Notes: a model not told the origin generated them from the sequence alone. A stretch of 64,000 nt of DNA from Podarcis filfolensis (GCA_964270895.1 OZ185438.1), one strand, 5' to 3'. Positions 1-64,000 are shown, counted from the stretch's first letter. A program made the numbers and translations.

Positions 1-771
1 AGGAAAGGGAGGGGGGTCACGCTCGCCGCCGCGGACGCTGTTTGGGTGGCGGGGCCGGCGCCGCTGCGTTGAGTCGGAGTCTGCGCCGCCGCCGCTGCTG
101 CTGCTGCTGGCCGAACCCTGCTAGAGCCGCCATATTGCCCGGGACACAGACACACCGTCTCCGCCGCGCCTGTGCCTCGCGTCGCCGCTGCTCTCCGTCC
201 CCTCCTCTTCCGCAGCCGGGCTCTCCTCCGTTGCCTCGCCGAAGAGAGGAGCCCCGTCTCGTCGCCCCCTCCCCGCTCCTCCTGCTCCCCTGCCCTCCTC
301 CGAGGCACTAGGCGCATATCGGCTCCTCCGTACTGGGAGCGACGGAGCCCCGCAGGCCCAGCCCAGCCGGAGCTTCCTGGCCAAGGCAGAGCGCAGCGGG
401 CTCGGGCCTTGCCTCTGGGCGCCCAGCACTGCGGCCGTCGCCGGGAAGCGGCGGCCCCACCGAACAGCTGGTGACGCAAAACTAAAAGGGAAGGGAAAGG
501 AGACTCGGCCCAGTTCGCGGCGTGTCGGGCGGCTCCCTGGGAGCAGTAGTAACGGCAGCGACTCGACTCCTGCCCGGCATGAGACACAGCCCCGCTGGTT
601 GCTGCGGCTGCAGCCGCCTGGGATGAGAAACTCTTCAGCCACACCCGCTGCAGCCTCCTCCTCCTCCTCTCATCGCCAGCAGAGCCAGCGGCGGCGGCGG
701 CGCCCGGGAGCGGAGCGGGCCTCGGCACTAGCGCGAGGAGCAGCAGCGGAAACAGGGGACGCTGTGTGGGG
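1..771 (+). other. USP9X: Putative non-coding exon 1 (5' UTR; start undefined)
   Basis: Best donor in the island is GGG|GTGAGC at 771/772. USP9X orthologues have a non-coding first exon and ATG in exon 2. Confidence 0.6.
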
Positions 772-1300
772 GTGAGCGAGCTGGGGAAGGCGCTGGGGCT
801 GCCATGGCCGGCGGCGGCGGCAGGGTGGGGGGCTAGGAGGAAGGGGGGCCACGCTGTGGGGAAAACAAGGGGGCTGAACCTGCGGGGTGGGGGCGCCTCG
901 CCGTGTGTGTCAGCGTGTCTTGGGGGGTTGGGAAATGCCTGCCCGTGCGTGTGTCGGTGTGTTTTGGAGTGAGAAGGGAAAATGGCTGACGACTCCTCAT
1001 TCTCTCTGCCCGGCCTGTCCTGGGCCTTGCGGGAGAATGGGGCGCGCACGCCCGGTATCCGCAGTCCCTGGGAGGGGGAAACACGGCCCCGCAGAGCTGG
1101 CCGGCTTCTCGCCTGACCCCCTTTCTCAAGTAGCCGGGGGAACGGGGCGAAGGAGGGGGGCGGAGGGAAGGGGCTCCCGGCACAGCTTCGCCCGGCGTTT
1201 AGTTCCTTTTGAGTCTCGTTTCACTTCACGCCAAACGCCATTACTGAGGTGGAGTGATTGGAATCGTGTAGGCCTGGGCTACGCCAGGAAATAAGGCCCT
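1..1300 (+). promoter_or_regulatory. USP9X: CpG island / TATA-less promoter and 5' end of USP9X
   Basis: Very GC- and CpG-rich up to ~1300, then abruptly AT-rich. GC box GGCGGGGC at 48-55, YY1-type CCGCCATATT at 127-136, CRE-like TGACGCAA at 472-479. TSS cannot be fixed from sequence. Confidence 0.85.
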
Positions 1301-1974
1301 GCTCAAGCTCTTTCTTTCTAAATCCGGTCTCAAACCGCCAGGCCCAGCGCATTCGCATTCCTTGTAAACATTATTGTCATGGGCGCAGGTGGGCTGTGTC
1401 ATGGCTGCACTCCTGGTTTCCAGTAAGGCCGTCGTGTTGCCGGATAAGCCCTCAGAATTCAACACCCTTTCTCCGTTAGCTTCCAGAAGATTATATTCTG
1501 GTTCTTTGTGTAGTCCTGGTGGTTTAAAACCCCTTACATTTTAGTTATTGTGCAAAATATGCGTTATAATTCAAATTATCTTGTTTGTCTTTTTTTTAAA
1601 AGACCTTTTTTTCCAAACTCGGGAATATATCTCCTAGATATGTTGTATGAATAATCGACATAGTTCCTTTTTGAACACAGGCTTGCTTTGTGAAATGCTT
1701 AAGCATTTTTAGGCTGCAATTTTACCTTGATATAATTAGCATCTGGGCTCCCATTGATTTTAATGGAGAGGTGTGCAGTCACAGCAAATTTACTTGATGA
1801 ATTTAGTTTTAATGTTATTGGGGTAGTTATTTTCAGACCATGTACAAAATGTGTCCTAATGTACATAGAAAAGGGACTGGAGAGTTACAAATCTATATAC
1901 AATTGTGACTTAAGCCCATTGAATTCAGTGGGACTTCTGAATAAGCATGCAGAGGATTGGGTGACATATGCAGT

Positions 1975-2023
1975 AAAGAATCCAAGGGGTCATGAAGAGT
2001 CGGACATGACTAAACAACAACAA
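1975..2023 (+). mobile_element. RTE/Bov-B-type LINE (or Bov-B-tailed SINE) 3' tail fragment
   Basis: GGGGTCATGAAGAGTCGGACATGACTAAACAACAACAA resembles the Bov-B 3' end with a (CAA)n tail. Confidence 0.65.
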
Positions 2024-16984: not shown

Positions 16985-17080
16985 ATGACAGCCACGACCC
17001 GTGGCTCTCCGGTAGGAGGGAACGACAGCCAGGGCCAGGCTCCTGATGGACAGTCCCAGCCTCCTCTCCAGCAGAATCAG
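16985..17080 (+). CDS. USP9X: USP9X exon 2 (coding part)
   Basis: [14 protein letters not shown]; CAG|gtatgg; 96 nt. Confidence 0.97.
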
Positions 17081-48100: not shown

Positions 48101-51100
48101 TAGTATAATTATTTAAAGCAGGAGTAGGCAGTGTAGTGTCCAAAACACTTGGTGGGCACCATGTTGACTATCCCTGATTTAAGGGGTACTCAATTTTAAG
48201 CTGCTTTTTATTGTAGGCTTCATTTTGATTAAATGCAAATATCAAATCTGAGATTTTGTGTGCCAAGGACTGGAATAAGAAAATATACTTAGTAAGTCTC
48301 ATTGATCACTGGAACAGGCTTTGAAATGAACTTATTCAGTACTAGGGTATTAAGCTAATGGCTGTTCAGAAGTGTATAGTTTTATTTAGAAGCTGAGCTA
48401 ATTTTCTAATACAATTGATTTCTCCTAGCTTGTGAAGCACTAACAGAATGGGAGTATCTTCCACCTGTTGGACCACGACCACCAAAGGGATTTGTAGGGC
48501 TAAAAAATGCAGGTGCCACTTGCTACATGAATTCTGTCATTCAGCAGCTGTACATGATTCCTGCCATCAGGAATGGAATCCTTGCAATTGAAGGCACAGG
48601 AAGTGATGTAGATGATGATATGTCTGGAGATGAGAAGCAAGACAACGAGGTAACACTATATTGTTTTTGACAAATTTTAATGTAGTTTAAGACTTCCCCT
48701 CCTCCCATAGCCCTATACTGTATATCTAGTTGTAATGGGAGATATTCAACTTTACACATACTCAGAATTGATAAAATGACTTGAAGAGAAATAAAAAGGA
48801 ATTTATGGCCACTGGGGGCGGGGGGAGACCATAAAGTGATACTATTTGTGGAAACCGGAGAACAATTCCAAACTGGTGCAACACAATAGAATGCCCACTA
48901 TCAAAGCAATTGATATTGCTATAAATAAGCAATCAAAAGTTGGTAGTCCCATGCTGCTTTTTATTGTTTAATTAAACACAAAGATCTCAACCCATTGGGT
49001 GACACCCAAGTAAGGTCATACTCAGAGTAGTTCAACTGATTTCTGGGACAATTCTTTAATAATGTTAGTGGTACATTTTATTTAGCTTTTTTATTAATCT
49101 GCAATTTTCTTTTACATTGACAGCTGTAGAAAGTGTAATTTCAGTAAAATGCAGCAGTTTTTGAAGAATTGATCTGCTAGTTTTCTTAAGCAAAAATAGT
49201 CTTACAACACCTTAAAGACTAGCATATTGATTACGGCAGAAGCTTTTTGTTAGACTTTAAAGTGCCATAACAAGAACTCTTGGGTGGTTGTTATTAATTA
49301 AAGTAACATTTCCCCCTTTTCGGTATATGAGATTTCGTAATAAGGGTCAATTATAATGGGTAATGGGATAAAGGTATAATGACAATAAATCATCTTGATT
49401 GTATTTACTCTGAAAAAAGAGTAAAAAACAAACAAACTGTGAGGGCTGCTTCCCACGAGTCTTGTTTTTGTACATGAGTATAGATGTCCACATACATAGG
49501 TGGAAGTAAGTGGGTGCAAGATGGCTTTCTAGTCCTTTGAAAAGCCTCTCACAAGGGTAGGAGGAGCTTCCTATGCATGGCACAGTCATGGTGTTTTGGA
49601 CTTACTGAAAAAAGTAATTGGAAAAGACTGATGTCTGTTTCCATATCTGTAAAAATCGCAAGCGGAACAATCCTGTTGCTTAATATGAGAATCTTTAGGT
49701 TGCCCACCTGGACTTTGGAACTGAACTGCTTTAGTTGACGTTAGAACCTTCATAGGGTTTCATATGTACTTGCATTTAATCTGAGCTGCTACTATTATTT
49801 CTCTAGCAGACATTACTAGGTTCTGTTCATAAGGCATATTAATTTCTATTTATTTTTTCATGCTTACCATTTATATTACATTACTTTTTTAATGTTAAAA
49901 GAGCAATGTTGACCCACGGGATGAAGTATTTGGCTATCCACATCAGTATGAAGATAAACCAAGCTTAAGTAAAACAGAAGACAGAAAAGAATACAACATA
50001 GGCGTATTAAGACATCTCCAGGTCATCTTTGGTCACTTAGCAGCTTCTAGGTTACAGTACTATGTACCCAGAGGGTTTTGGAAGCAATTCAGGTAAATAG
50101 GAAATTAACTTATGTTGAACTGTGTTTATGTGAAGTCTTATGATAGAAACAGTATATGTTTAATGAAATGCAGTGGAATTTAATATATACTCCTTAAGTG
50201 ACACTGTGATGTGTATCTTTTTAATCATGCAGAAAGCAAGGTCAGGAAACCCCAAAATCACTGCATAGATGAAAATATTGGGCTAGTTCAGACATGGGCT
50301 GAGTGGAAGGGCCATAGCTGAGGGGTAAGAGCACCTGCTTTGTATGCAGGCCCCAGGTTTGATCCCTGGCATCTCCAGGTACAGCTGGGAGAGACCTTAG
50401 CCGGAAACCCTGGAAAGCAGCTGCCAGTCAGTGTAGACAAGTATGTTAGATGGACCAGTGGACTGACTCAGTATAAGGCAGCTTCCTGTGTTCCTATGTG
50501 TAGGGTGTAAATATGGCAGGAGCAAGCATTTACCCTCCTCTACAATAGGCAAAAGTCTTCAGTGTGAAATGGAACTTAGGCTTATACATTTCTATATGAG
50601 CAAGCCCCACTCATGAGAGTGGTCTACTGGTGGAGGAGGTGGCTGGAGTACTTGAGTAAGTTCCCAAGTTTCAGGCCCAGTAATGGTTCCAGGGCCTTAA
50701 GGCTCATATCTCTACCACGCTGAACATTTAGCCTTTTTATATCTGAACTAGAGCCGGGTCATTTCCCCCCAGTTTCAGAGTTCATCCAGTTTTGAGAATA
50801 CATTTCACATCGCTCCTCCCTCACCTCAGTAAGGGGAAGGCAGTGCAAAGTGATTTGTCTATCGGTGTTCAATTTGTGGTTCCCCAAATGGGCACCGCCA
50901 GTCTGCTATCTCTGTATGCTGAGTGCCACCCCGAGTAAGCCAGAGTACTAGGTTACGTATTTTAAGAGCTGTGCAGCACTTATGAGGATTGCTAGCTAAT
51001 TGTAATCTCAGCTTATATGAAGATAAATTTATATAATAGTGATGTAAACTACTTTAATTTTTTTATGCTACTTGATTTTGCTGTTAGAAATTCTGTGTGC

Positions 51101-54100
51101 TTTTATAATGAGAATCTTTTCCATCCTAGACTCTGGGGTGAGCCTGTAAATCTACGTGAACAGCATGACGCTTTAGAATTTTTTAACTCCTTGGTGGATA
51201 GCCTAGATGAAGCTTTAAAAGCCTTGGGTCACCCAGCAATGTTAAGTAAAGTTTTGGGAGGCTCCTTTGCTGATCAGAAGATCTGTCAAGGCTGCCCACA
51301 TAGGTAAGTGTTTCTTCTCTATCATCTCATTTTCATAAAATCAAAGTAATAATGGGCACCCACTAAAAATATGCTACAAGTCTCCCATTTATGGAAAAGT
51401 ACAGAGACCATTTAGGAGTGGTTCATATTAGCAAGTTACTCTAAATACAGCTGATGCAACGTTCTGAGCCATGTTGAGGAAAGTTATCAACCAAAGTTTC
51501 CAAAAAAAATTTCAGAGTCAGCTCTATGATAGCAAGACACACATTTTCTGACGTAATTAAGACGGCAATCACCAGATATTACATATCAGTTACATATCAG
51601 AGTATAGCCTGGTTCGTGCTGACATCCCCAGAGAAGCCTAGGCAACTCTATGGCTATAGCTGCTGACACTCAAGGCAACATGCTTTTGTGAGCCCACACT
51701 TAACGTTTGTAATTTGTCATTTGGTTTGACAAGTTGGACTTGCAACAAAATGATGCATTATGGCGCACTCCTCTTCTGGTGCCAGCCAGATATGCCTTTT
51801 TCATGTCCGTCTTCATTCCGCACCCACCCACCCCAAGATGCTCATAGTTTGTGATCTTATTAGACCTTATTAATTTGCCCCCCCCGCCCCTTAAAGAGTT
51901 TTGTCCTAAAGACATTTTTAGAGCCTGTAATATCTCCCTATTGTACATGGATTGTGCTGTTTTGGTTACAAAAGGCAACTGGAGAATGAATTTGTAATAT
52001 GGTCAAAATAAATACGGTACTATATCTAGAGTGAAATTTCAAAATGCTTTTTTGAAAGCTGATGCTGTGTAAATGTTAAATAATAGTGAAGCACCCTAAA
52101 TGTTCCTTAAGTGTATTCAAAATACTAGACTTTATGATATTTTACATTTTCAGATTAAGATGTACAGTAATCCCTACCAAAGTTTAAGTCCAGATTCTGA
52201 GACTGACTTGCCTCTTGGCTTGCTCACACATCACAGTTGTGGGTACTGATAGGAAGGTCTTGGTGCTGGTCATCATGCACTCGTGTCTATTGCTATTTTT
52301 CAGGACTGATAAAGTTGTGCTGAGACAGCTGAGAAAAAATGTCATAAGCATATTTATAACCTCTATGGAACAGATTTCTTGAGCGTTTTGTACACTTAAA
52401 ATACACATTTTTGGTACTGTTTTCAAAACATTGCTTCAGGATGAAAACATTTTCTTGAATTCATACTATTACTATGTCAGCATAACTTAACCTAATCTGC
52501 CAACAATTAATAGGTACGAATGTGAAGAATCTTTTACAACGCTGAATGTAGATATAAGAAATCACCAAAACCTGCTTGACTCCTTGGAACAGTACGTCAA
52601 GGGAGACTTACTGGAAGGTGCAAATGCATATCATTGTGAAAAATGCAACAAGAAGGTAACTGAAATACAGCATTTTTCTTTCTCCTTTTTCTCTTTTAAT
52701 AATAAAAAAAATACCTTTGAAAATTCATATGAACGTGCCAACTATTTAATTTTGGAAGACCTAATGCAATAACTGTAAGTCTCAGTTCTCCTACACAATG
52801 AAGCCATCTAAAATGTTTCAGGCATGGCCAAAGTTGGTCATGTTAGCTAGGGATAATGGGAATTGTAGTCCCAAAACAGCTGGAGGACCAAGTTTGGTGA
52901 TGCCTGAAACATTTTAGATGGCTTCATGGTGTAGGAGAACACATATTTCATAACCACAATTCAGGAAGGACTGTTAAAGCTGCAAACCAGTCTTTTCGAT
53001 ATTATATCAAATTTGTCTGTGATGTGCAATGCATAATGTATTGATAGTTACTTGGTATATTATAGCACTTTGACAAAGAATTGTGGCAGTATTTTTCACT
53101 TGCATTTGTAGTTGGCATTGATAATTTGCGCAGATAGAATACATTAACATGTGAATCTTTTATTCCTTAGGTTGATACAGTTAAACGCTTGCTAATTAAA
53201 AAGTTGCCCCCAGTTCTTGCCATCCAACTAAAACGATTTGACTATGACTGGGAAAGAGAATGTGCAATCAAGTTCAACGACTATTTTGAATTTCCACGAG
53301 AGTTGGACATGGAACCTTATACAGTGGCAGGAGTAGCTAAACTAGAAGGGGATGATGTAAATCCTGAAAATCAGCTGATACAGAATGAACAGTCTGAAAA
53401 TGAGCATTCTGGAAGTACTAAATACAGACTTGTTGGTGTATTGGTGCACAGTGGTCAAGCCAGTGGTGGACATTACTACTCTTACATAATTCAGAGAAAT
53501 GGTGGAGATGGTGAGAAAAACAGATGGTATAAATTTGATGATGGTGACGTAACAGAATGCAAAATGGATGATGATGAAGAAATGAAAAATCAGTGTTTTG
53601 GTGGAGAGTACATGGGAGAAGTATTTGACCATATGATGAAGCGCATGTCTTACAGACGTCAGAAGAGGTGGTGGAATGCTTACATTCTCTTTTATGAACG
53701 TATGGACACAGTAGACAGAGACAATGAACTAATAAAATATATTTCAGAACTTACAATGACCACTAAACCCCATCAAATTAAAATGCCATCGGCCATTGAG
53801 CGAAGTGTACGGAAGCAAAATGTCCAGTTCATGCATAACCGAATGCAGTACAGCCTAGAATATTTCCAGTTCATAAAGAAATTACTGACTTGTAACAGTG
53901 TCTATCTAAATCCTCCTCCAGGTTAGTGTTTGGATATTTATAATAAATTTTGACAAGAGGTAGTAAAAGTATATAGCTTTTAACATTTCTCATATTGTTG
54001 TGTATCATTTTAAACATTACAAATTTGGATAAGAGACTATTGTTCCTCAGGCATTTTCTAATATGTAAGAGCGATAGAAAAGACAAGGTTGCTGTTTCCT

Positions 54101-57100
54101 TGGTGTTAAGCATTATTTACATTTGCTAAAAAAACGTATTTGGCCGATAAATGCAACAAAAAAGATACTGGTGTCTAACTGAAGTGCTGTGGTCTGTAAG
54201 TCCAACTGTTTTATAGATCACAAGAAAAAAATGTTTAGCAATGCTGACTGACAACTTAAATTTGAGTACTGAATTCTCTTAAATATCTTTCCTGGTTTTT
54301 TTTTTAAATAAAATTTAAATACCACTTACTATAACAAGTTACAAAAGTTTTTTTTGTTTTTACTATAACAAGAAATCTCTGAGAGGTTTACATAAAATAT
54401 AATAAATCATTTAAGGTTTATATTGAGAGTCAGGTTGACAAACAACTTGGAATAATCTGTTGTATCACTTTCAAATAAATGTCTTAACATTTTGTGTTCT
54501 GTTTTTCTTTAGGACAGGATCATCTATTGCCTGAAGCAGAAGAAATAACCATGATTGGTGTTCAGCTTGCTGCTAGGTTTCTCTTTACCACAGGATTTCA
54601 CACAAAGAAAATTGTCCGTGGTCCTGCCAGTGACTGGTATATTTGCCTTTAAGAAGAATTTGACTGTCATAAGTTTTATTGTACTGATTATATGATACAA
54701 TTTAATCATTCAAAATGTGAAATAACAGTGCATTGAAACTGAGCCTCAAAACCACTGTTTCTAGTAGTTTTTAATTTTGTTAAAACTTGGGTTAATAAGG
54801 AATCCTGGTTCATATTAATCATGGTTAACAAAGCTCCTACTACTAACATGCAGTGCTGGATTTGAAGTGTCCACCTTTATACACAAGTCTGTTTTCTGGG
54901 TATGTGATGCTGTTAATTTATTTTTTTTCCAGGTATGATGCTCTGTGCATTCTCCTTCGTCATAGCAAGAATGTACGTTTTTGGTTTGCGCACAATGTCC
55001 TTTTCAATGTTTCAAATCGCTTCTCCGAATACCTTTTGGAATGCCCTAGTGCTGAAGTGAGGGGAGCATTTGCAAAACTTATAGTATTTATTGCACATTT
55101 TTCATTGCAAGATGGACCATGTCCTTCACCTTTTGCTTCACCTGGACCTTCTAGTCAGGTATGCTTTTTCTACAATCAGAATACAATAGTAGAGAGCTGT
55201 TAAATTCTATATAGTCTAAATGTAAATTGATATAATAGAATTTTTTTTATAAGGGTGACTTAATTAATCTCCATTTAGCACAGGGTGGGGAACTGTTGGC
55301 CCACAAAGGCTTTTTATGTGACCTGCCAACCCCCAACACATTTTGTGGCCACAGAAGTGTTGCTGCTTGGGCGAGGAAGCACCATTGCTCACTGCTTCTC
55401 CTCCTGGCTTCCTCCACCACTTCTGCAAAATTTAATTGCTCCTTGCTTTGAGGCACTACATGTCACTTTTATTGTAATTCCCAAGTAAACTGTCACTCCA
55501 AGAGTATTCGGTGATAATCACCAGTACGCTGCTATCTTTAGATACCCAAGCGCTCGAGAAGCAGCCGTTCCATTGGGAACTGTAAGAGAAGCCAGCTGTA
55601 CCTTGCAGCAAGGGGCAGGGTGAGAGAAGCCAGACCCTTGGAAGTTTGGCGGTGAGGGAGTTGCAACCCTTGGGCTCAAAACAATTTCCCACCCCTGGTT
55701 TCAGAATTATTTATTTATTTGGTCTTTCTGCTATGTTCTTGACTACCTTCCTGAAGGTTACTGTTTGAATTGGTCTCATATTTAGCACCCCTGGCTCTCC
55801 CAGTTTAATCTGCTAAGTAATGTGTGATACATTCCTCTGTTATTCAGTATAGGATAAAACATTTTAATCACAGAAATTTGATACAGTGAATAGTTCAGGA
55901 ATTGAATTTGATATCATTAGTTCTGATAATTAAACAATAAAAGTTGCATTTCATTCTGGTTCGAGAATTTATGTTCAGCTGGTCTTTTAACAGGCTGCAG
56001 TGAAGCAGCTTTACATGTTGAATAATAATAATAATGTCATCAACCTTTGTGTTGTTTTATAGGCCTATGACAATTTAAGTTTGAGCGACCATTTGCTGAG
56101 AGCAGTACTGAATCTTCTTCGAAGGGAAGTGTCTGAGCACGGGCGCCATTTGCAGCAATATTTCAACTTGTTTGTGATGTATGCCAACTTAGGTAATGTG
56201 ATGTTTCACCCTAAAGGCTTTGTCCATGTTGTTCTGTCAGTGCACTTACTTAATAGTCTTGACTCTTGCCCATTGAATGCTTAATGATGCGGCACAAATT
56301 GTTATTAATAGCTTAAATCAGTGGTTTTCAGCCTGTGCTCTGGGGATCCCTTAATGCAGGACAGTCTTCTCTGGAAGACAGTTTACCCACCACTACCAAT
56401 TTTTCCATAATCCCACAGCTGCAAGGGAAAAGAGTGTTGGCTGGTTTTTCCCCAGAGCTATTCCTCAGCAGACAATTGATGTGTTCTTAATATTGTTGAA
56501 TCAGAAAGGTTTTGAGTGATTCTGGCTGGATTGTTGAAGGCATGGAGTATTGTATTCACAGTAAATGCCCATTTATGGATTTCCCAATGTGAACAGTTAT
56601 CTGAATATTTTTTGTTTATATGATTCAGTTCAGTAGCTTAAATGTAGCTAAGTATGTTTTCATTATTCTTCCTCTTTTTCCAACTTCCCTTTAGGTGTAG
56701 CAGAAAAAACACAGCTTTTAAAACTAAATGTACCTGCCACATTTATGCTTGTGGCACTGGATGAAGGCCCAGGTCCTCCAATCAAATACCAGTATGCTGA
56801 ACTAGGCAAACTATATACTGTGGTGTCCCAGTTAATCCGCTGTTGCAATGTGTCATCACGTATGCAGTCTTCTATCAATGGTACTGTTAACTCTGGAGCA
56901 TTTAAACAGAATATATTTGTGATTAAATGTGTGTGGCAGTTTATTATTCATCATAGCATCTCACCAATCTTTTGTCTGTTATGCTGGCCTGTGTTTACTT
57001 AAAGATTTGGAAAAGTTTCAAATCATTAAAATACAGTAAGCTCACAACTTACACATGTTTAAGTTGTGCTCGTTCAGCTTTCCATGCTTGGCATTGTTTA

Positions 57101-58524
57101 AAGAAAAGAAATTAGAAAGGAGACATCCAGGAGAAAAGACTTTGGCAATCCCACCTGCCATTGTACCCAGTGTGTTTTGACTATACTTGATTTTTAGTTT
57201 AGGCATGATCCCTGGAATGTAACCTTCCATGTAAGTTGAGGATTTTCTATATTACCAGAACTGTATGTGCAAAGGTTGGTTCTCTTAAATGTGTCTAGAT
57301 GTGACACAACTATTCCATATTTTGGTAGTGCAAGTTAAGCCTATTCCAAGGGAAGTCTTAGAAAAACCTTGTTTAATTGTACAGGCTTTGATTTTTCACT
57401 AAGGAATACTACCAAACCCCATGTTTTACAAAACCAGCCGCAATGCTTTACAGTGATCATAACTGTTACATCAGAAGTTTAATCTGTATCTGTCAGACTC
57501 GGCCTAGGTGAATACTTATAGAATAGCAATTTTCATAATCGAACAAGAGACATTTCATATATGTATGTAATGTACTTCACATGTTCTGTGAAGTAATTAA
57601 AAAGATGACATTAAATAGTACCTTGTTGGTTTCTGTAGTTCAAATAAAAAATAATATAACAACATTTCTTTTTAGGTAATCCTCCACTTAGCAACCCTTA
57701 TGGTGATACTAATTTATCACAGCCTATAATGGCACTTCAGCAGAATGTGGCAGACATCTTGTTTGTGAGAACTAGTTATGTGAAAAAAATAATTGAAGAC
57801 TGCAGTAACTCAGAAGAGACCATCAAACTACTTCGCTTCTGCTGTTGGGAGAATCCTCAGTTTTCATCTACAGTCCTTAGTGAACTACTTTGGCAGGTAA
57901 AAAATGATTAAAATGTCAGGAAAGGTGTGTTTTATTCAAGAGGTTGATGTGCAGAGATTATTGTCCCTTGATTTTCATCCTGTTAGTCTTTAGAGTTGCA
58001 ACAAGTAGTGGTTACTTTAAAAAAAGTCACCACCAGAGAAAATGAATGCTCTTTCAATGATAAAGCCTAATTTAACAGAAATATTTCCTTGGCTTGCGGC
58101 GTTGAAATGAAAGCTCATTCATAATATAATACTGTACCCCTCCAGTTCTTCATAGCATGAATTCTCCTGTACTACACACTTAAATAATCATTAATTGCAT
58201 GTTAATATTTTCCTCAAATTCCACTTTTTAAAGGTTGCATATTCATACACATATGAACTTCGACCGTACTTGGATCTCCTTCTGCAAATCTTGCTAATTG
58301 AGGACTCTTGGCAGACTCACAGGTTAGCACTTGGGTTTCTTGGGTTTTTGGGGTCTACATTTTTTGCATTAATAATGTGGTGCTTCTGTGTGAAAGTCTT
58401 TGTAATTGCTTCATGGAGACATAGCAGATTTTAGTTGCCTACTGGAAACAATAAAGTACCTTAAGCTGTATCCAAAGTGACTGTTACCAGAGCATATGGG
58501 GACTGCCAAATGCTCATGCACTCA

Positions 58525-58572
<48 letters not shown>

Positions 58573-61500
58573 GGATATGATATATATGATAAATTAGCTA
58601 GCAAGGTTTTTGTGCAATTGTTACTTTAAATTAAATTATACAGATGAGTTTAGTTGTTAAAACTGTTAAGCTGTTAATTCCTTGGTTCAGCTATCTTCTC
58701 TGAGAATGCTTTAGGTGGTTCTGGATAAAGCATTATTCTCTTCTCTGCTTCCCATCTGTTACATGGGGGTGATAATACTGGTCTACCTTCTTCTTCTTTG
58801 GCAATCACTTGTAGCCGAGTACGGTTGTCTTCCGTGAACAGGGTCTTAACAGTGAGTCCATAAGTGACTGGGGGAGCCAATTCTGGATCCGCACATCCTT
58901 CCACAGTGGGGACATAGGTTTCTGGGTGGATGTTGATCATGGCGGCATACTTTACCAGGGAGAAGACAAGAAGGACTACTGAGATGAGGGGGAACTGTTT
59001 TGAGTACTTGGGAAAACTGCTATATAAACACTGAGCCTTATTAAATTGGTTGAGTGTTCTATTTTGTGTGAATCAATCTGCTATAAAAATCATTCAGGCT
59101 AGAGCTCAAAAGGATTTTTAATTTTATTTCTGCAGGGAAGTGGAGGGAGTTTATGGTAGAGAAACAGCAGCTGGGTTCAGGAAAGCTTAGGCAGAAATGG
59201 AGACCTGAGGTCACTTTGCATGGGCCCTAAAAAAAAAATCTGGTACAGGCCATAATGGTGATTACCAAGTGAGAAAATGAACACATTCTGCATATTTAGA
59301 TGTCACTCTTTTAGAAGAGGGTGTGAAGAAATAAATAAAAAATATCACTGACAGTCCTTCACAACTACTGGTACTCTGTAATGATATGGCAAGATCCTAG
59401 AAGAGAGACATTCCATCTTGTTATGAGTAGAGGGGGCATGTCTCTCCTAAGATTGTGTCTTACACCCACAGTTTTGCAAGTACAGACACTGATTATCTGG
59501 ATCTGCTGGGTCTAAGCTTGTTCAACATTTTAATGCTAGCCCTTTAGGATGCTGACATTTACATGCATGTTTATAGTCTGTGTGAAATTCTGACTTTTTG
59601 GTGCGTTTGGGATTCTCTTAGGATTCACAATGCACTTAAAGGAATTCCAGATGACCGGGATGGGCTATTTGATACCATTCAACGCTCTAAGAATCATTAT
59701 CAGAAAAGGGCTTACCAGTGTATAAAGTGTATGGTAGCTCTTTTCAGCAACTGTCCAGTAGCCTACCAGATTTTACAGGTAATTACTTTTATCTCAAGAA
59801 AAAATTACTTTCTCTGTTTTTCCAATGCTACGAAGAGAGGGACAGGACTGAACCAAGTTTAGTTATAACAGAACTCTTTCTGTAGAGTCACTAAGATAAA
59901 GCCATGGTCTTATATATTTTATCCAAATAAATTGGGGGGAAAACCACCAGGAGCAAATGTCTATTCCCTCATAGAAATAAAATTAGAATAGAATTGTAGG
60001 ATTGGAAGGGAGGTATCTCAACGAAAGCATCCATGTCAAAATAGAACTGTAGGGACCTTACTGGAGTATTTTTTGTTTGCTTTGGTTTTTTGTTTTACAA
60101 AAATCAAGAGTAATGAATGGGAAACTATACACCCCGTTTAAAAAGCTGCATTGGACTGAGGTGTGTTTAGAAGTAATTTTAAAATACTGAATGGCCTTTT
60201 TTCATCTTTTCAGAGCAATGGAGATTTGAAGAGAAAGTGGACCTGGGCAGTAGAGTGGCTTGGAGATGAGCTTGAACGTAGGCCATACACTGGCAATCCA
60301 CAGTATACATATAACAATTGGTCTCCTCCGGTCCAGAGTAATGAAACATCAAATGGCTACTTCCTAGAGAGATCACACAGTGCAAGAATGACCCTTGCAA
60401 AAGCTTGTGAGCTATGCCCAGAGGAGGTAAGGAGTGAATTTACAACTAATGTTGCTTTGGCATTCTTTGGAAGACAAACAACTTGTTTCATAAAATTCCT
60501 GATAGAAATATATGTTAGTTACATAGTTGAAGTGCTAGCTGGCACTATAAGATTTATGAGTTGTTTCTTGCTTAGTGAGACTTCGGAACTCATAAGTAGG
60601 CAGGAGTTAAGTCCTCCACTGTACCAAGTGCCTCCAGTTATCACTGTGAGAGGCAAGGGAGATTGAGCACTCCTCTGGCCACAGCCTCCAAACCTGTAAT
60701 TCTTAATATAGCAGCATCTACTTCTGATAGCTGTTACATAGTATAGGATTTAGAGAGGTGCCTGCAGAAGGGGTTGGCAGAAGCTGAATTTCTTTCTTGT
60801 TCCTTCTCAAAAAGAGCTGCTTCCAAGTGTCCGGGTATCCTGATTCATTTGGGGCGGGAGAATCTGCCCAGATTTTTATTTTGGAGTTCCTCCCTTAGGC
60901 TCCATGTCATAGCCAACCATATATCAGGGTTGCCCAAACCCTTAGGAGAGGCTGGGATAGTGGGCAGTGATGTGATGGAAGCGGCAGGGTAGTCAGCTTC
61001 CGCCCACACATTCTGCAGGAATTTCTCTGGGTCCAATCAATTGCCAGAAGAAAATGAGGGCAAGGAATTTAAATGTGAAAAGTAGTTTTATTTTTTGTTT
61101 TAATGGGCAATTTTCATTTTTAGGAACCAGATGACCCAGATGCCCCTGATGAGCATGAGTCCTCTCCACCAGAAGATGCTCCATTGTATCCCCATTCGCC
61201 TGGTTCCCAGTATCAACAGGTAAGCAGAGAATTATCTGTAAAACATGTCAATTCATTTTGGTATCCTTTGAACTTTTTACTTCAGCTTTTAAAAAACATA
61301 TTGCCAGTTTTATTCCTTTTAGGACAAGGATAACTGTTTGACAAGAACATCATAGAATGTGATTCAGGTAGACGGGCTCTTCCAGCAAAGTGTAATGTGC
61401 AGACAGGTTTTTTGTTCTTTAGTATCTTGTGAATGCCCTCACACACAACCATCATATGGGAACAATTATCTAACTTTTTTCTCTGTGAGCCAGCAAGCCA

Positions 61501-62715
61501 ACTTGAATCAGCTCATAGGTGCATCCAGAGAAAAACTAAATTCCCCCAATATGACATGTCCATTGATGCTTTGAAGACCACTTTAAAAAACAACCTATGC
61601 ATTGTAAAATGTCTAAAATGTCACCCAAGTTTTGCACACAGTGATCTGCTAATAGAAGTTTCTGAACCAGCATTGAAGTCTGATTCTGCCCTGCTATAGT
61701 TCATGTATAACACCATGTGACCTTAAGTTGCATGTATGTACATCTCTTAAAAGTTAAATGCCTTTGTAAATGTAGTGCTAACTCCAGAAAGCTAAAATTG
61801 TAATTATCTTGCATTACCTTCATAAGTCATACATAACCAGTATTTGTTCCATTTCCTTTCCTAAATAATTAATTCTATATCCTTAATCTGTTAATTTCCT
61901 TTCCTGCTCATTTTCCTTCATCTTGCTTTCTTTATCGATGTGTTCAGCAGAGCAGTTGGTAAGTGATATAGACCCAGTCTCCTCAAAGTTGAAACACGTT
62001 TAACCACCAGCTCCCTTATTTGTTAGTGTGTGGTGTCTTCACTTTCTCACAAGAGCTGGCTTTTTTCACCTCCTAACATGCACAATGGCTATATTTTAAG
62101 TCCAATTTTAGGTTCGTAGTTGACCCAGCTTCACATTACACAAAGGTACACGAATGTTTTACATCTGCCAGTTTAGATGTGTTAACAGTTAAAACAAACA
62201 TATTTGATGATGATCACCTCAAGTCATTTTATTAAGTTTGACACAAGAAATATACTGTCCCTTTGGAAGAAAGGCCATTCACAATTATCACTTCCTGCTT
62301 CTGTGTACTAATTAAAACTTTCCTCCCCACCATTCCATTTCTGAAGATTTGTTATGAGGACCTTCACATAAAGCTTCAGCTTTTGCATGAAGTTGGAATT
62401 AATTAACTGTAACCTTTCAATTTCAGTGCAAATTTATCTGTTCTATTTTTAGTTGGCGGTAAGTGTGAGTAGCTCTCTAGTTGTAATTTAAAAATATAAA
62501 TTATTGCTTGCCCAGTTCCCTGAGCTACTTTTTTGGGGAAATATAGAAGTTATTCTTAACATGTGTTTTGTCTCTTCCAGAATAACCATGTGCATGGACA
62601 ACCATATACAGGCCCAGCAGCACATCATATGAACAACCCTCAGCGAACTGGCCAACGAGCACAAGAAAATTATGAAGGCAGTGAAGAGGTGTCACCGCCT
62701 CAGACGAAAGAATAG
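16985..62715 (+). CDS. USP9X: USP9X/FAF-X deubiquitinase, spliced CDS of 44 coding exons (7659 nt, 2552 aa)
   Basis: N-terminus [23 protein letters not shown], Cys box [20 protein letters not shown], Zn-ribbon CQGC/CEKC, His box [19 protein letters not shown] and C-terminus [16 protein letters not shown] all match USP9X as recalled. All introns are GT-AG, phases are compatible, and exon lengths sum to 7659 nt. Confidence 0.98.
19247..19364. mobile_element. Degraded short hAT MITE (family B-like)
   Basis: CTCCAGATGTTTTGGGCT..TGTAGTCCAAAACCTCTGGAGGGC palindromic core; boundaries approximate. Confidence 0.5.
20072..20217 (+). CDS. USP9X: USP9X exon 3
   Basis: [14 protein letters not shown](R); 146 nt; ag|..|gt. 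Confidence 0.97.
20351..20430 (+). CDS. USP9X: USP9X exon 4
   Basis: [26 protein letters not shown]; 80 nt. Confidence 0.97.
21807..21919 (+). CDS. USP9X: USP9X exon 5
   Basis: [21 protein letters not shown]; 113 nt. Confidence 0.97.
22166..22384 (+). CDS. USP9X: USP9X exon 6
   Basis: [21 protein letters not shown]; 219 nt. Confidence 0.97.
22598..22763. mobile_element. Young GC-rich hAT MITE (166 bp)
   Basis: Perfect 17-bp TIR CAGTGGCGTAGCGTGGG/CCCACGCTACGCCACTG; perfect 8-bp TSD gtgcttag. Confidence 0.92.
22950..23199. mobile_element. Tc1/mariner MITE
   Basis: TA|CAGTCGTACCTTGG..CCAAGGTACAACTG|TA; 250 bp. Confidence 0.88.
23374..23572. mobile_element. Tc1/mariner MITE (inverted relative to 15576-15777)
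   Basis: TA|CAGTGGTACCTCGGGTTAC..GTAACCAGAGGTGCCACTG|TA; 199 bp. Confidence 0.9.
23949..24064 (+). CDS. USP9X: USP9X exon 7
   Basis: [17 protein letters not shown](K); 116 nt. Confidence 0.97.
24154..24188. repeat. (GT)n microsatellite, ~17 units
   Basis: Pure GT run ~90 nt downstream of the exon 7 donor. Confidence 0.98.
25274..25409. mobile_element. Short palindromic hAT MITE (136 bp, family B)
   Basis: CAGGCTTCCTCAAACTC..GAGTTTGAGGCAGCCTG; perfect TSD ccataaag. Confidence 0.9.
25673..25924 (+). CDS. USP9X: USP9X exon 8
   Basis: [13 protein letters not shown](R); 252 nt. Confidence 0.97.
26008..26146 (+). CDS. USP9X: USP9X exon 9
   Basis: [17 protein letters not shown]; 139 nt, after an 83-nt intron. 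Confidence 0.97.
26458..27120. mobile_element. Three degraded family B-like hAT MITE remnants (~26458-26580, ~26752-26870, ~27000-27120)
   Basis: Each carries parts of the GGGGAAC..GGCCCT..CAGATGTT..GGACT..CAACTCCCATCA..GGCCAATG..ACATCTGGAGGGCC..CCACCCCTG motif set; boundaries approximate. Confidence 0.5.
27428..27580 (+). CDS. USP9X: USP9X exon 10
   Basis: [15 protein letters not shown]; 153 nt. Confidence 0.97.
28591..28695 (+). CDS. USP9X: USP9X exon 11
   Basis: [15 protein letters not shown]; 105 nt. Confidence 0.97.
29195..29560 (+). mobile_element. CR1 LINE 3' end remnant
   Basis: GATGACCACCAATTTGGATGATTTTAAAAGAGGAGTAGGCAAATTCATGGAGGAT..GGCCTGATTCAGTAGG matches reptile CR1 RT end/3' UTR as recalled. 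Confidence 0.7.
29962..30168 (+). CDS. USP9X: USP9X exon 12
   Basis: [16 protein letters not shown]; 207 nt. Confidence 0.97.
30715..31078. mobile_element. Tc1/mariner Tc2 (Kanga/MER104-type) non-autonomous element
   Basis: TA|CCGTATTTTTCGCTCTATAACACGCAC..GAGTGTTATGGTGCAAAAAATACGG|TA; 364 bp; internal CATAACACGCAC repeats. Confidence 0.8.
31417..31553 (+). CDS. USP9X: USP9X exon 13
   Basis: [14 protein letters not shown](S); 137 nt. Confidence 0.97.
32377..32510 (+). CDS. USP9X: USP9X exon 14
   Basis: QTQRSPH..RQYAK(E); 134 nt. Confidence 0.97.
33098..33185 (+). CDS. USP9X: USP9X exon 15
   Basis: HGEYDPQ..LNFL(R); 88 nt; donor CG|gttggt. Confidence 0.95.
34745..35078. mobile_element. Young Tc1/mariner MITE with internal tandem array
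   Basis: TA|CAGTGGTGCCTCGCAAGACGAA..TTCATCTTGCGGGGCACCACTG|TA (20/22 TIR); 334 bp; ends 84 nt before exon 16. Confidence 0.9.
35163..35505 (+). CDS. USP9X: USP9X exon 16
   Basis: [14 protein letters not shown]; 343 nt. Confidence 0.97.
36380..37320 (+). mobile_element. Degenerate L2-clade LINE, RT 3' half
   Basis: GATGATACCCAGCTC (DDTQL) at 36402-36416; CCAGATTGGATTACTGCAGTGCATTCTA (RLDYC..), [16 protein letters not shown] and ACCAGACTAGGTTCCAGGTGCTGGT segments; AT-rich tail. Confidence 0.75.
38035..38130 (+). CDS. USP9X: USP9X exon 17
   Basis: [14 protein letters not shown]; 96 nt. Confidence 0.97.
38508..38719 (+). CDS. USP9X: USP9X exon 18
   Basis: [12 protein letters not shown](R); 212 nt. 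Confidence 0.97.
39328..39568 (+). CDS. USP9X: USP9X exon 19 (ubiquitin-like domain region)
   Basis: [18 protein letters not shown]; 241 nt. Confidence 0.97.
39799..39948 (+). CDS. USP9X: USP9X exon 20
   Basis: [13 protein letters not shown]; 150 nt. Confidence 0.97.
40048..40168 (+). CDS. USP9X: USP9X exon 21
   Basis: [12 protein letters not shown](D); 121 nt. Confidence 0.97.
40655..40785 (+). CDS. USP9X: USP9X exon 22
   Basis: NTTVEK..LYLTE; 131 nt. Confidence 0.97.
40884..41096. mobile_element. Tc1/mariner MITE related to 14545-14784
   Basis: TA|CAGTGCTACCTC..GAGGTATGACTG|TA; 213 bp. Confidence 0.88.
41288..41566 (+). CDS. USP9X: USP9X exon 23
   Basis: [13 protein letters not shown]; 279 nt. 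Confidence 0.97.
41770..41895 (+). CDS. USP9X: USP9X exon 24
   Basis: [13 protein letters not shown]; 126 nt. Confidence 0.97.
42130..42290 (+). mobile_element. Degraded tRNA-derived SINE (Squam3-like)
   Basis: AGAGCACATGCTTTGCATTCAGAA..GAGACCCTGGAGAACCACTTCCCAAGTTGACAGTAC..AGATGGAC resembles 50309-50498. Confidence 0.5.
42450..42575 (+). CDS. USP9X: USP9X exon 25
   Basis: ASKYIPD..KIYEK; 126 nt. Confidence 0.97.
42988..43016. repeat. (TCT)n microsatellite, ~9-10 units
   Basis: Pure TCT run. Confidence 0.95.
43030..43190 (+). mobile_element. LINE 3' terminus (L2-type squamate tail)
   Basis: TGTAAGCTGCCCAGAGTGGCTGGGGAAACCCAGCCAGATGGGCGGGATATAAAT followed by an AT tail; recalled as a common lacertid LINE 3' end. 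Confidence 0.6.
43465..43631 (+). CDS. USP9X: USP9X exon 26
   Basis: TNAGNEP..LHCHS(K); 167 nt. Confidence 0.97.
44504..44612 (+). CDS. USP9X: USP9X exon 27
   Basis: [18 protein letters not shown]; 109 nt; not visible in the ORF track. Confidence 0.96.
45262..45420 (+). mobile_element. CR1 3' remnant
   Basis: GATGGCCACCAACTTGGATGGTTTTAAAAGGGGATTTGACAGATTC..GGCCAACTGTGAGAACAGGAT. Confidence 0.6.
45957..46103 (+). CDS. USP9X: USP9X exon 28
   Basis: [13 protein letters not shown]; 147 nt. Confidence 0.97.
46302..46448 (+). CDS. USP9X: USP9X exon 29
   Basis: DEVKRTG..ANLIK; 147 nt. Confidence 0.97.
47263..47485 (+). CDS. USP9X: USP9X exon 30
   Basis: ELIDDF..TAIT(T); 223 nt. Confidence 0.97.
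48429..48649 (+). CDS. USP9X: USP9X exon 31 (Cys box; catalytic Cys codon 48521-48523)
   Basis: [23 protein letters not shown]; 221 nt. Confidence 0.98.
49902..50092 (+). CDS. USP9X: USP9X exon 32
   Basis: [12 protein letters not shown](R); 191 nt. Confidence 0.97.
50309..50498 (+). mobile_element. tRNA-derived SINE, Squam3-like
   Basis: A-box GGGCCATAGCTGAGGGGTAAGAGCAC, B-box GGTTTGATCCC, body GGAAACCCTGGAAAGCAGCTGCCAGTCAGTGTAGACAA..GATGGACCA..GTATAAGGCAGCTTCCT. Confidence 0.8.
51130..51303 (+). CDS. USP9X: USP9X exon 33
   Basis: [21 protein letters not shown](R); 174 nt. Confidence 0.97.
52514..52655 (+). CDS. USP9X: USP9X exon 34
   Basis: [14 protein letters not shown]; 142 nt. Confidence 0.97.
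52819..52906. mobile_element. Internally deleted family B hAT MITE (88 bp) inside a longer palindrome
   Basis: CAGGCATGGCCAAAGTTGG..CCAAGTTTGGTGATGCCTG; flanked by aaatgttt/aaacattt. Confidence 0.8.
53171..53921 (+). CDS. USP9X: USP9X exon 35 (His box; catalytic His codon 53471-53473)
   Basis: [29 protein letters not shown](G); 751 nt. Confidence 0.98.
54513..54636 (+). CDS. USP9X: USP9X exon 36
   Basis: QDHLLPE..PASD(W); 124 nt. Confidence 0.97.
54933..55158 (+). CDS. USP9X: USP9X exon 37
   Basis: YDALC..GPSSQ; 226 nt. Confidence 0.97.
55281..55697. mobile_element. hAT-like non-autonomous element (~417 bp)
   Basis: Ends CAGGGTGGGGAAC..AATTTCCCACCCCTG; TSD not recognisable. Confidence 0.55.
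56063..56192 (+). CDS. USP9X: USP9X exon 38
   Basis: AYDNLSL..YANL(G); 130 nt. Confidence 0.97.
56695..56880 (+). CDS. USP9X: USP9X exon 39
   Basis: VAEKTQ..QSSIN(G); 186 nt. Confidence 0.97.
57676..57896 (+). CDS. USP9X: USP9X exon 40
   Basis: NPPLSNP..ELLWQ; 221 nt. Confidence 0.97.
58234..58322 (+). CDS. USP9X: USP9X exon 41
   Basis: VAYSYTY..WQTH(R); 89 nt. Confidence 0.97.
58525..58572. repeat. Compound microsatellite (CT)8(AT)8(AG)8
   Basis: Counted directly; self-reverse-complementary. Confidence 0.97.
59622..59778 (+). CDS. USP9X: USP9X exon 42
   Basis: IHNALKG..YQILQ; 157 nt. Confidence 0.97.
60214..60426 (+). CDS. USP9X: USP9X exon 43
   Basis: [13 protein letters not shown]; 213 nt; GAG|gtaagg. 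Confidence 0.97.
61124..61219 (+). CDS. USP9X: USP9X exon 44
   Basis: [13 protein letters not shown]; 96 nt. Confidence 0.97.
62581..62715 (+). CDS. USP9X: USP9X exon 45 (coding part, stop TAG 62713-62715)
   Basis: [16 protein letters not shown]; 135 nt. Confidence 0.97.
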
Positions 62716-64000
62716 TGGAAATGCACATAATTAACTTGCCCCATCAAGACTGTGCACCCAGGCCTTACAGTCCAACTTTTCTCTGTGTCTGGNNNNNNNN
62801 NNNNNNNNNNNNNNNNNNNNNNNNNNNNNNNNNNNNNNNNNNNNNNNNNNNNNNNNNNNNNNNNNNNNNNNNNNNNNNNNNNNNNNNNNNNNNNNNNNNN
62901 NNNNNNNNNNNNNNNNNNNNNNNNNNNNNNNNNNNNNNNNNNNNNNNNNNNNNNNNNNNNNNNNNNNNNNNNNNNNNNNNATTCTTAAGCAAGAAACATT
63001 TTTTTGTCTTGATGAGACTCACAGATCTACAACAATTAATTTCTTGATATATCCGCTGCGCTCTACAACCAGTGTTGCCTGCCTAATGGCAGTTGGATCA
63101 ACTTCTTTCCCCAAAAAAGTAAGCCTCTCCATGTCAACCAGAAAAATAGTTTCATGTTAATTCTTTGCCACTGGAGTCAATTTTACTATGAGCAACGTAA
63201 TGACTGGTAACCTTTTAATTATTTGGTTGATGTGGAAAATTGGTGATGTAACATTGTTTCTAGGTCTTTTTTCATTGCCTTTTTCATTCTGGTATTAGGT
63301 TAATCACTTTGAAGCTATAGTTAAGCTGTAACATTTAGCATGGCTTCACACCAGGTTAGTGTAGCCAGTGAGGAAAGAAAAATTACAGTTGTCCCAGAGT
63401 GACAACTGTGTTGTTCAGAGCCTATTCTTCTGCCACCTAGAATATAAAACAGGGAGGGGAGGGTTGGGCAATGTGACAAACAGGTGGTTTTCAGTTGCAC
63501 ATATGTTCCTCACATCTGATGTTTGACAGTTTTGTCTCTGGGTGGGATAAAAGAACACTTAGTTTTCAGTAATAGGAAATTAAAAGATTTAAAACAAATA
63601 TGCAAATTTTTGCTATGCCAGGATGCCTGGAGCATAATAGACTGTATTTGGTGTGCTTGTTTTGTTTCTTTGGTAGAGCTTATTTGATAAACTTCTAACA
63701 CTTTCCTTTCTACTGCATTGCAGTGAAGTGGAAGTCAACAAAATCACACAATACTTGTGAGTGCCACTGCACCAAGTTAACTTGCTGGTTTTCTGCTCGT
63801 TCACAATTCTACTTGAAAACAAGAATTGAATCTTAGCTCTTTGTCCATGATAAGAGAAATCGAAACCTTAGAAGCAGAGTTTGATTATTAAAAAAACAAA
63901 CAAACTACTGGTTAGTCAAATACAAAACTGAGGTATCTCTATTCCAGAGTAAACATTTGTTTAAGGACTTCAAGGAAGACATCAGTAAATACTGTATTTA
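62716..64000 (+). other. USP9X: USP9X 3' UTR (continues past window end)
   Basis: AT-rich sequence with no recognisable repeats after the stop. No AATAAA seen; ATTAAA variants at 63579-63584 and ~63887-63892. Confidence 0.85.
62793..62980. other. Assembly gap (188 N)
   Basis: Run of N in the sequence. Confidence 1.

Follow-up and report, generated by a model that had tools for sequence, protein, structure and literature searches.

The last intron (intron 44) of the ubiquitin hydrolase gene USP9X in Podarcis filfolensis (GCA_964270895.1 OZ185438.1) carries a short splice-like unit that is invariant in four lineages. In the 64,000-nucleotide (nt) stretch of one strand (hereafter the window), this unit, TCAGCAGAGCAGTTGGTAAGT (61944-61964), comprises tandem CAGCAG acceptors, a candidate microexon of 11 or 8 nt and a GTAAGT donor. 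All four lineages kept the core, the long AG-free zone in front of it, the blocks that hold the UGCs and the A with which the last exon opens, and the intronic island around the unit was absent from the fish introns compared. We lean towards the interpretation that the unit is a selectively maintained, alternatively used (regulated) microexon of USP9X; that it is in fact included, in which tissue, through which factors and with what consequence for the protein, is what we infer from this anatomy. An earlier note on this DNA had proposed a regulated, tail-removing microexon at this site, and its proposal clearly passed the comparison with orthologous introns, whereas the RBFOX motifs that it had invoked were not conserved.

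Conservation of the intron 44 splice unit

The gene in the window was identified as the USP9X orthologue by exon 43 (60214-60426), whose peptide was identical at 70/70 positions to residues 2426-2495 of PDB 7yxx_A ('Probable ubiquitin carboxyl-terminal hydrolase FAF-X'), and by exons encoding UCH domains upstream of it. A search with the exon 43 peptide, together with a word search with the exon 43 open frame, yielded open reading frames (ORFs) on vertebrate genomic contigs and gave access to orthologous 3' ends from three reptile-type lineages, namely L006 (JGI), L040/L041 (two Logan samples, 99% alike) and L007. The exon 44 peptide was the same in the window and in all of these contigs, with a nucleotide identity of 89-92%. 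At the four-fold sites of exons 43-44, the window differed from the other three lineages by 30-37%, L007 differed from L006 and L040 by 24-26%, and L006 differed from L040 by 14%. Intron 44 (1361 nt, phase 0) could be aligned between the window and L006, L040/L041 or L007 over 13-16% of its length only, and every alignable segment lay inside a single island around the candidate (Table 1), with blastn extents of 61891-62086 (L006), 61843-61972 (L040) and 61867-62077 (L007). When positions 50000-62574 of the window were compared with these loci, whose sequence extends as far back as about 56,700, the alignable pieces apart from the island were coding exons only (about 6 kb). Between the closer pair, L006 and L040, the island was 90-96% identical, compared with 79% for the whole of intron 44; a second short peak of 88-96% identity was seen in this pair upstream of the island (alignment columns about 300-375 of the L006 intron), which could not be aligned to the window.

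In the four-lineage alignment (A2), the longest invariant run was TCAGCAGAGCAGTTGGTAAGT, which matches the tandem acceptor, microexon and donor exactly, followed by TTCACTTTC (62038-46), TTGCTTTC and TCCTGC. Taking the neutral rate conservatively as the 52% of exon 43-44 four-fold sites that are invariant across the four lineages, the chance of a 21-nt invariant run anywhere in intron 44 was about 0.002 (0.52^21 × 1355 start positions). Judged from this alignment, strong purifying selection acts on the unit, down to the single base across both splice sites, and the splice unit of intron 44 is almost certainly functional. Conservation of the acceptor and donor pair in orthologous introns, which the earlier note had named as a test of its proposal, was therefore observed, since the acceptor-microexon-donor unit, the long AG-free zone and both UGCs were kept while the remaining intron was unalignable. 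The island was not found in three fish introns 44 (L008 from Aldrovandia, 1.4 kb; L042, 454 nt; L009, about 95 nt), and the teleost contigs L001-L005 stop just past exon 44 and so cover no full intron 44. A cotton-rat contig (L043) was tried as a mammalian comparison and set aside as uninformative, since it carries a divergent paralogue and exon 44 does not fall within its reach; the dog UniRef proteins led to no recorded contig.

The island, at about 240 nt, is much larger than a microexon, as might be expected of a non-coding element that has nothing to do with splicing of the unit, be it a transcriptional enhancer, DNA bound by protein or a structured RNA, and whose resemblance to AG..GTAAGT would be accidental. 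We regard this explanation as decidedly unlikely, because the longest invariant run is precisely the acceptor, exon and donor, and because the AG-free property persists where the sequence itself diverges. A structured RNA is further disfavored by the lack of any Rfam match near the candidate (six sub-threshold chance hits lay elsewhere in the intron, E 0.14-0.53) and by a weak consensus fold with 0 compensatory pairs in RNAalifold; an origin from a repeat or duplication was likewise rejected, with no repeat family and no second copy in the window. The RNAalifold prediction included a hairpin at 61933-61963, in which the conserved CTTAC-type stretch of the acceptor region was paired with GTAAG of the donor with one-sided changes only, and which, if formed, would sequester both acceptor and donor. 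Downstream of the unit, a further conserved block of the alignment (Table 1) is a candidate intronic enhancer or silencer; its invariant CTAAC, a match to the branch-point consensus, lies about 115 nt past the candidate donor, with about 500 nt remaining to the acceptor of the last exon.

We also considered a chance pseudo-exon without function, such as the many AG..GT pairs that occur in introns. Among the 26 GTAAGT sites on the plus strand of the window, only the candidate had an AG at 3-30 nt in front of it that follows at least 40 AG-free bases of at least 70% pyrimidine, and none of the 15 sites on the minus strand qualified. Our rough chance estimate is about 0.05 such acceptor/donor combinations per 64-kb window. 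The AG-free run of the candidate was the second-longest on the plus strand among 4318 AGs (longest, 117 nt). By comparison, the AG-free zones of 20 real USP9X acceptors had a median length of 34.5 nt and reached 77 nt at most, against 105 nt at the candidate; splice-site matrices built from the 20-21 real USP9X sites were too sparse, with real sites scored in-sample, and the comparisons of AG exclusion and pyrimidine content were retained. The motif is thus unusual locally, yet it is expected many times per genome and alone proves nothing. Indeed, a second look-alike is present in the same intron (tttttAG, TTGGCG, GTAAGT; 62451-62464, with GTGAGT directly behind it to 62470), whose 6-nt form would be in frame. 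It has an AG-free zone of just 24 nt, lies beyond every segment that aligns to the other lineages, is unrelated to the candidate by alignment (score 20, against a shuffled mean of 20.4) and is probably a chance decoy. The candidate counts as more than chance because of its conservation rather than the motif alone: it is invariant over four lineages whose introns are otherwise unalignable, and the 30-37% four-fold divergence together with those unalignable introns disfavors close kinship of the lineages to the window species as the cause. On the aligned sequences, the chance explanation is close to refuted.

Acceptor architecture and reading frame

The sequence statements of the earlier note on the candidate were all correct when the positions were re-read. 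Behind the AG-free, pyrimidine-rich tract follow four AGs (61946-47, 61949-50, 61951-52 and 61954-55), the first two belonging to a CAGCAG tandem acceptor of the NAGNAG type at 61945-61950 that is the same in all four lineages, and then the GTAAGT donor at 61959-64. The resulting exon of 8 or 11 nt falls within the microexon size range of 3-27 nt. The AG-free zones of the orthologues measured 113, 123 and 114 nt, so that the four lineages span 105-123 nt, and the TGC motifs at 61905 and 61924 both fall in invariant blocks; the long AG-exclusion zone and the upstream UGCs, which the earlier note had read as microexon marks, were kept in every lineage. A putative distal branch point precedes the two UGCs (Table 1), and a branch-point-like CTAAT, which matches CUAAY, was found at -60/-65 in L006, L040 and L007. 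As for the RBFOX marks, both TGCATG motifs (61729 and 62384) fall outside the island and are not conserved, and no GCATG was found within 400 nt downstream of the candidate in any of the four lineages, so the candidate lacks this feature of RBFOX-enhanced exons. A recursive splice site was considered and rejected, as TTG lies between the last AG (61954-55) and GT and as intron 44 is no long intron.

Exon 44 ends at 61219 (..CAACAG, followed by a GTAAGC donor), and the frame across the candidate bears out the claim that a stop would be made across the final junction with loss of the 44-amino-acid tail. The 11-nt form reads QSS followed by TG/A and the 8-nt form SS followed by TG/A, for a protein end of ..QYQQ(Q)SS, while the shorter forms of 6 nt and 3 nt would stay in frame and add QL and L, respectively. 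Since the last exon starts with AAT in the window, L006, L007 and L040/L041, the junction TGA is conserved in every orthologue. When the acceptor is read without the donor (61959-61966), the frame continues QSSW and then meets TAA within GGTAAG; any use of this acceptor would therefore truncate the tail, because read-through of the donor stops at once. A stop at the last exon junction is not a trigger of nonsense-mediated decay (NMD) under the 50-nt rule, with which the escape from NMD suggested in the earlier note is consistent.

The position of the four AGs, all invariant within 10 nt, also allows a real microexon whose main products come from the downstream AGs (61951-52 or 61954-55), which would add QL or L in frame and truncate nothing, in keeping with the in-frame outcomes that are the rule among neural microexons. 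We consider this very unlikely, as second-step scanning after a 105-nt AG-free zone is expected to select the first AG and its NAGNAG partner at +3, and as an exon of 3 or 6 nt would place the acceptor within the U1 footprint of the donor.

For a regulated microexon ending the frame, we suggest the following mechanism. The distal branch point (about 61893) and the roughly 105-nt AG-free tract, rich in CU and UGC, would serve the tandem acceptor, and the strong GTAAGT donor immediately behind would define an exon of 11 or 8 nt. In most cells the microexon would be skipped, giving the ordinary 44-45 junction. Inclusion would occur where activators are present, with SRRM3/4-type factors acting on the conserved UGCs, and/or where repression of the CU-rich tract by PTBP is lost. 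The included frame, QQ-(Q)SS-TG/A, would then end the protein 2-3 residues past exon 44, minus its conserved 44-amino-acid C-terminal tail, and the mRNA, with its stop on the last exon junction, should evade NMD by the 50-nt rule. A bolder version is that a sauropsid-wide, possibly amniote-wide, switch-like microexon removes this vertebrate-conserved tail in neurons or another specific cell type, so that cells would make a stable deubiquitinase that lacks the tail and differs in partner binding or localization; we consider this version doubtful.

Spliced transcripts and the surrounding locus

A scan of metagenome collections with exon 43 returned the L006 contig, short contigs and one spliced sequence, L010 (MAVL01000213.1, 916-1341), a cDNA-like contig of the L006-type lineage that contains USP9X exons 43-44-45. 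L010 splices exon 44 straight to the last exon and skips the candidate, and its ordinary 44-45 junction indicates that skipping is the default form in this lineage.

A single spliced contig without the segment is also what would be seen under the main rival to the regulated microexon, a decoy or regulatory pseudo-exon, in which the conserved pair would recruit U2AF/U2 and U1, be ligated rarely or never, and control whether, or at what speed, the last intron is removed (a detained or retained intron), to tune USP9X output. The conserved splice signals and flanks fit such a decoy equally well, exons of 8-11 nt are intrinsically difficult to define, and for OGT, conserved decoy exons with a role in the regulation of intron detention have been described (PMC12017769, PMC7261177). 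Against a decoy stands the combination of UGCs, long AG exclusion and a CU-rich tract, an architecture specific to included microexons, as well as the shortness of intron 44 (1.36 kb). Decoy exons described so far are, in addition, of ordinary exon size, and this also counts against the explanation. On these grounds we rate a decoy as improbable, though still to be reckoned with.

Several points weigh against a regulated, frame-ending microexon. Apart from the skipped candidate in L010, neural microexons known so far mostly keep the reading frame and the candidate breaks it, the 11-nt and 8-nt forms both shifting to the junction TGA; frame preservation is, however, typical of neural microexons and not obligatory. 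The pyrimidine tract adjoining the acceptor AG is broken by purines (GATGTGTTCAG), and the window itself has TTAAT, not CTAAT, at the putative branch point. The depth of conservation was measured as sequence divergence alone. Finally, the literature searched showed no link of USP9X to a microexon, a C-terminal splice isoform, SRRM4, or decoy or poison exons, the accessions of the runs and contigs were cited nowhere in it, and a review of USP9X describes no splice isoforms (PMC4427618).

Other searches of sequence collections touched the same region. Six ORFs from the intron had no exact match in the sequence collection. Sequencing runs matching the region comprised DNA of the source species; a close relative's DNA (about 55% of words), bulk RNA and single-cell RNA. 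Runs X1-X14 were small libraries of 75-150 million letters under five organism labels, each with 28-47% of the words of 61100-62790, a content that would fit sequence capture of a conserved region, or close relatives.

The features are collected in Table 1. Away from the 3' end, window positions 1-2000 had 59% GC against about 39% elsewhere and presumably represent the CpG-island promoter of USP9X; since the protein match begins near 16985, the first coding match in the window, the entire gene seems to fit inside it. A run of N occupies 62794-62980, in the 3' untranslated region right past the USP9X stop codon. In the USP9X of ray-finned fish, a further coding exon of 37 amino acids (CHLTKH..QQHT) lies between the equivalents of exons 43 and 44; intron 43 showed no trace of it in the window, L006, L007 or L040.

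Table 1. Features at the 3' end of USP9X, in window coordinates unless a contig is named
Feature	Position	Strand	Remark
Exon 44, penultimate USP9X coding exon, 96 nt	61124..61219	+	Phase 0 at both ends; peptide end ..GSQYQQ
AG-exclusion zone and pyrimidine-rich tract, before the first acceptor	61841..61945	+	105 nt, 0 AG, 75% pyrimidine
Conserved intronic island, ~240 nt, centered on the candidate	61843..62086	+	blastn to other lineages, 70-75% identity
Putative distal branch point, AATCTG(Y)TAAT	61885..61895	+	About 52 nt before AG; nearly invariant in A2
Invariant TCCTGC block, distal UGC at -41	61902..61907	+	Fourth-longest invariant run of the four-lineage alignment
Invariant TTGCTTTC block, proximal UGC at -22	61923..61930	+	Third-longest invariant run; UGC at -22/-23 in all lineages
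21-nt core TCAGCAGAGCAGTTGGTAAGT: tandem CAGCAG acceptors, candidate microexon, GTAAGT donor	61944..61964	+	Invariant in four lineages
Candidate microexon, 11-nt form (8-nt form 61951-61958)	61948..61958	+	(Q)SS, then TG/A with the last exon
Downstream conserved block	62034..62077	+	Alignment A2; holds invariant TTCACTTTC (62038-46) and invariant CTAAC (62073-62077)
Last coding exon (exon 45)	62581..62715	+	44-amino-acid tail and stop; initial base A completes TGA
Extra fish exon	L008 2121-2231; L009 about 2075-2185	n/a	Also in proteins P0203, P0205

Significance and comparison with known systems

USP9X is a dosage-sensitive deubiquitinase required in neuronal migration and axon growth, and its C-terminus binds DCX and SMURF1 (PMC4427618). 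Three mutations in X-linked intellectual disability (XLID), two missense and one truncating, cluster in the C-terminal region, and none of the three mutants corrects the impaired axon growth and migration of Usp9x-null neurons (PMC4427618). These data bear on the wider C-terminal region and not on the 44-amino-acid tail specifically. The truncating XLID mutation of USP9X reportedly lies near the 44/45 junction. If the regulated microexon is real, a conserved, NMD-immune exon that deletes the tail would be a built-in route to a functionally different USP9X, the tail-less enzyme could be a natural parallel to the truncating C-terminal mutation in XLID, and one 21-nt element would offer a direct handle on the role of the tail. 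If it is a decoy instead, it would be an unusually small case of splice-site-based control of a last intron. Microexon or decoy, the element is strongly constrained.

Among known systems, the decoy exons of OGT intron 4 (PMC12017769, PMC7261177) resemble the candidate in being a highly conserved, exon-like intronic unit in a dosage-sensitive X-linked regulator. The candidate also invites comparison with microexons that introduce stops. In contrast to its 8 or 11 nt, the OGT decoys reportedly have the length of ordinary exons and work together with a defined silencer. Neuronal microexons that introduce a stop, such as that of Bak1 (20 nt), trigger NMD or block translation in the cases described; they share with the candidate a very short regulated exon and a frame change that disables part or all of the protein, and differ in that the stop of the candidate would fall on the last junction, so that a stable mRNA for a tail-less enzyme is expected. 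NAGNAG acceptors offer another parallel, as the invariant CAGCAG would yield an 11-nt and an 8-nt form, the longer one with an additional Gln; here the choice of AG would leave the outcome the same, both forms ending in SS and a stop.

The closest comparison is with neural microexons that depend on SRRM3/SRRM4 (eMIC), for which extended AG exclusion, UGC close to the acceptor, a CU-rich stretch and a CUAAY branch point have been described (PMC8797185). The candidate departs from them in shifting the frame and ending the ORF, where they add a few residues, and in not being found in the three fish introns examined. It agrees with them in its size (no more than 27 nt), its long AG-exclusion zone, its upstream UGCs, its CU-rich tract and its strong donor, and, beyond these, in the strong conservation of its intronic flanks and, for three of the four lineages, in a distal branch point resembling CUAAY.

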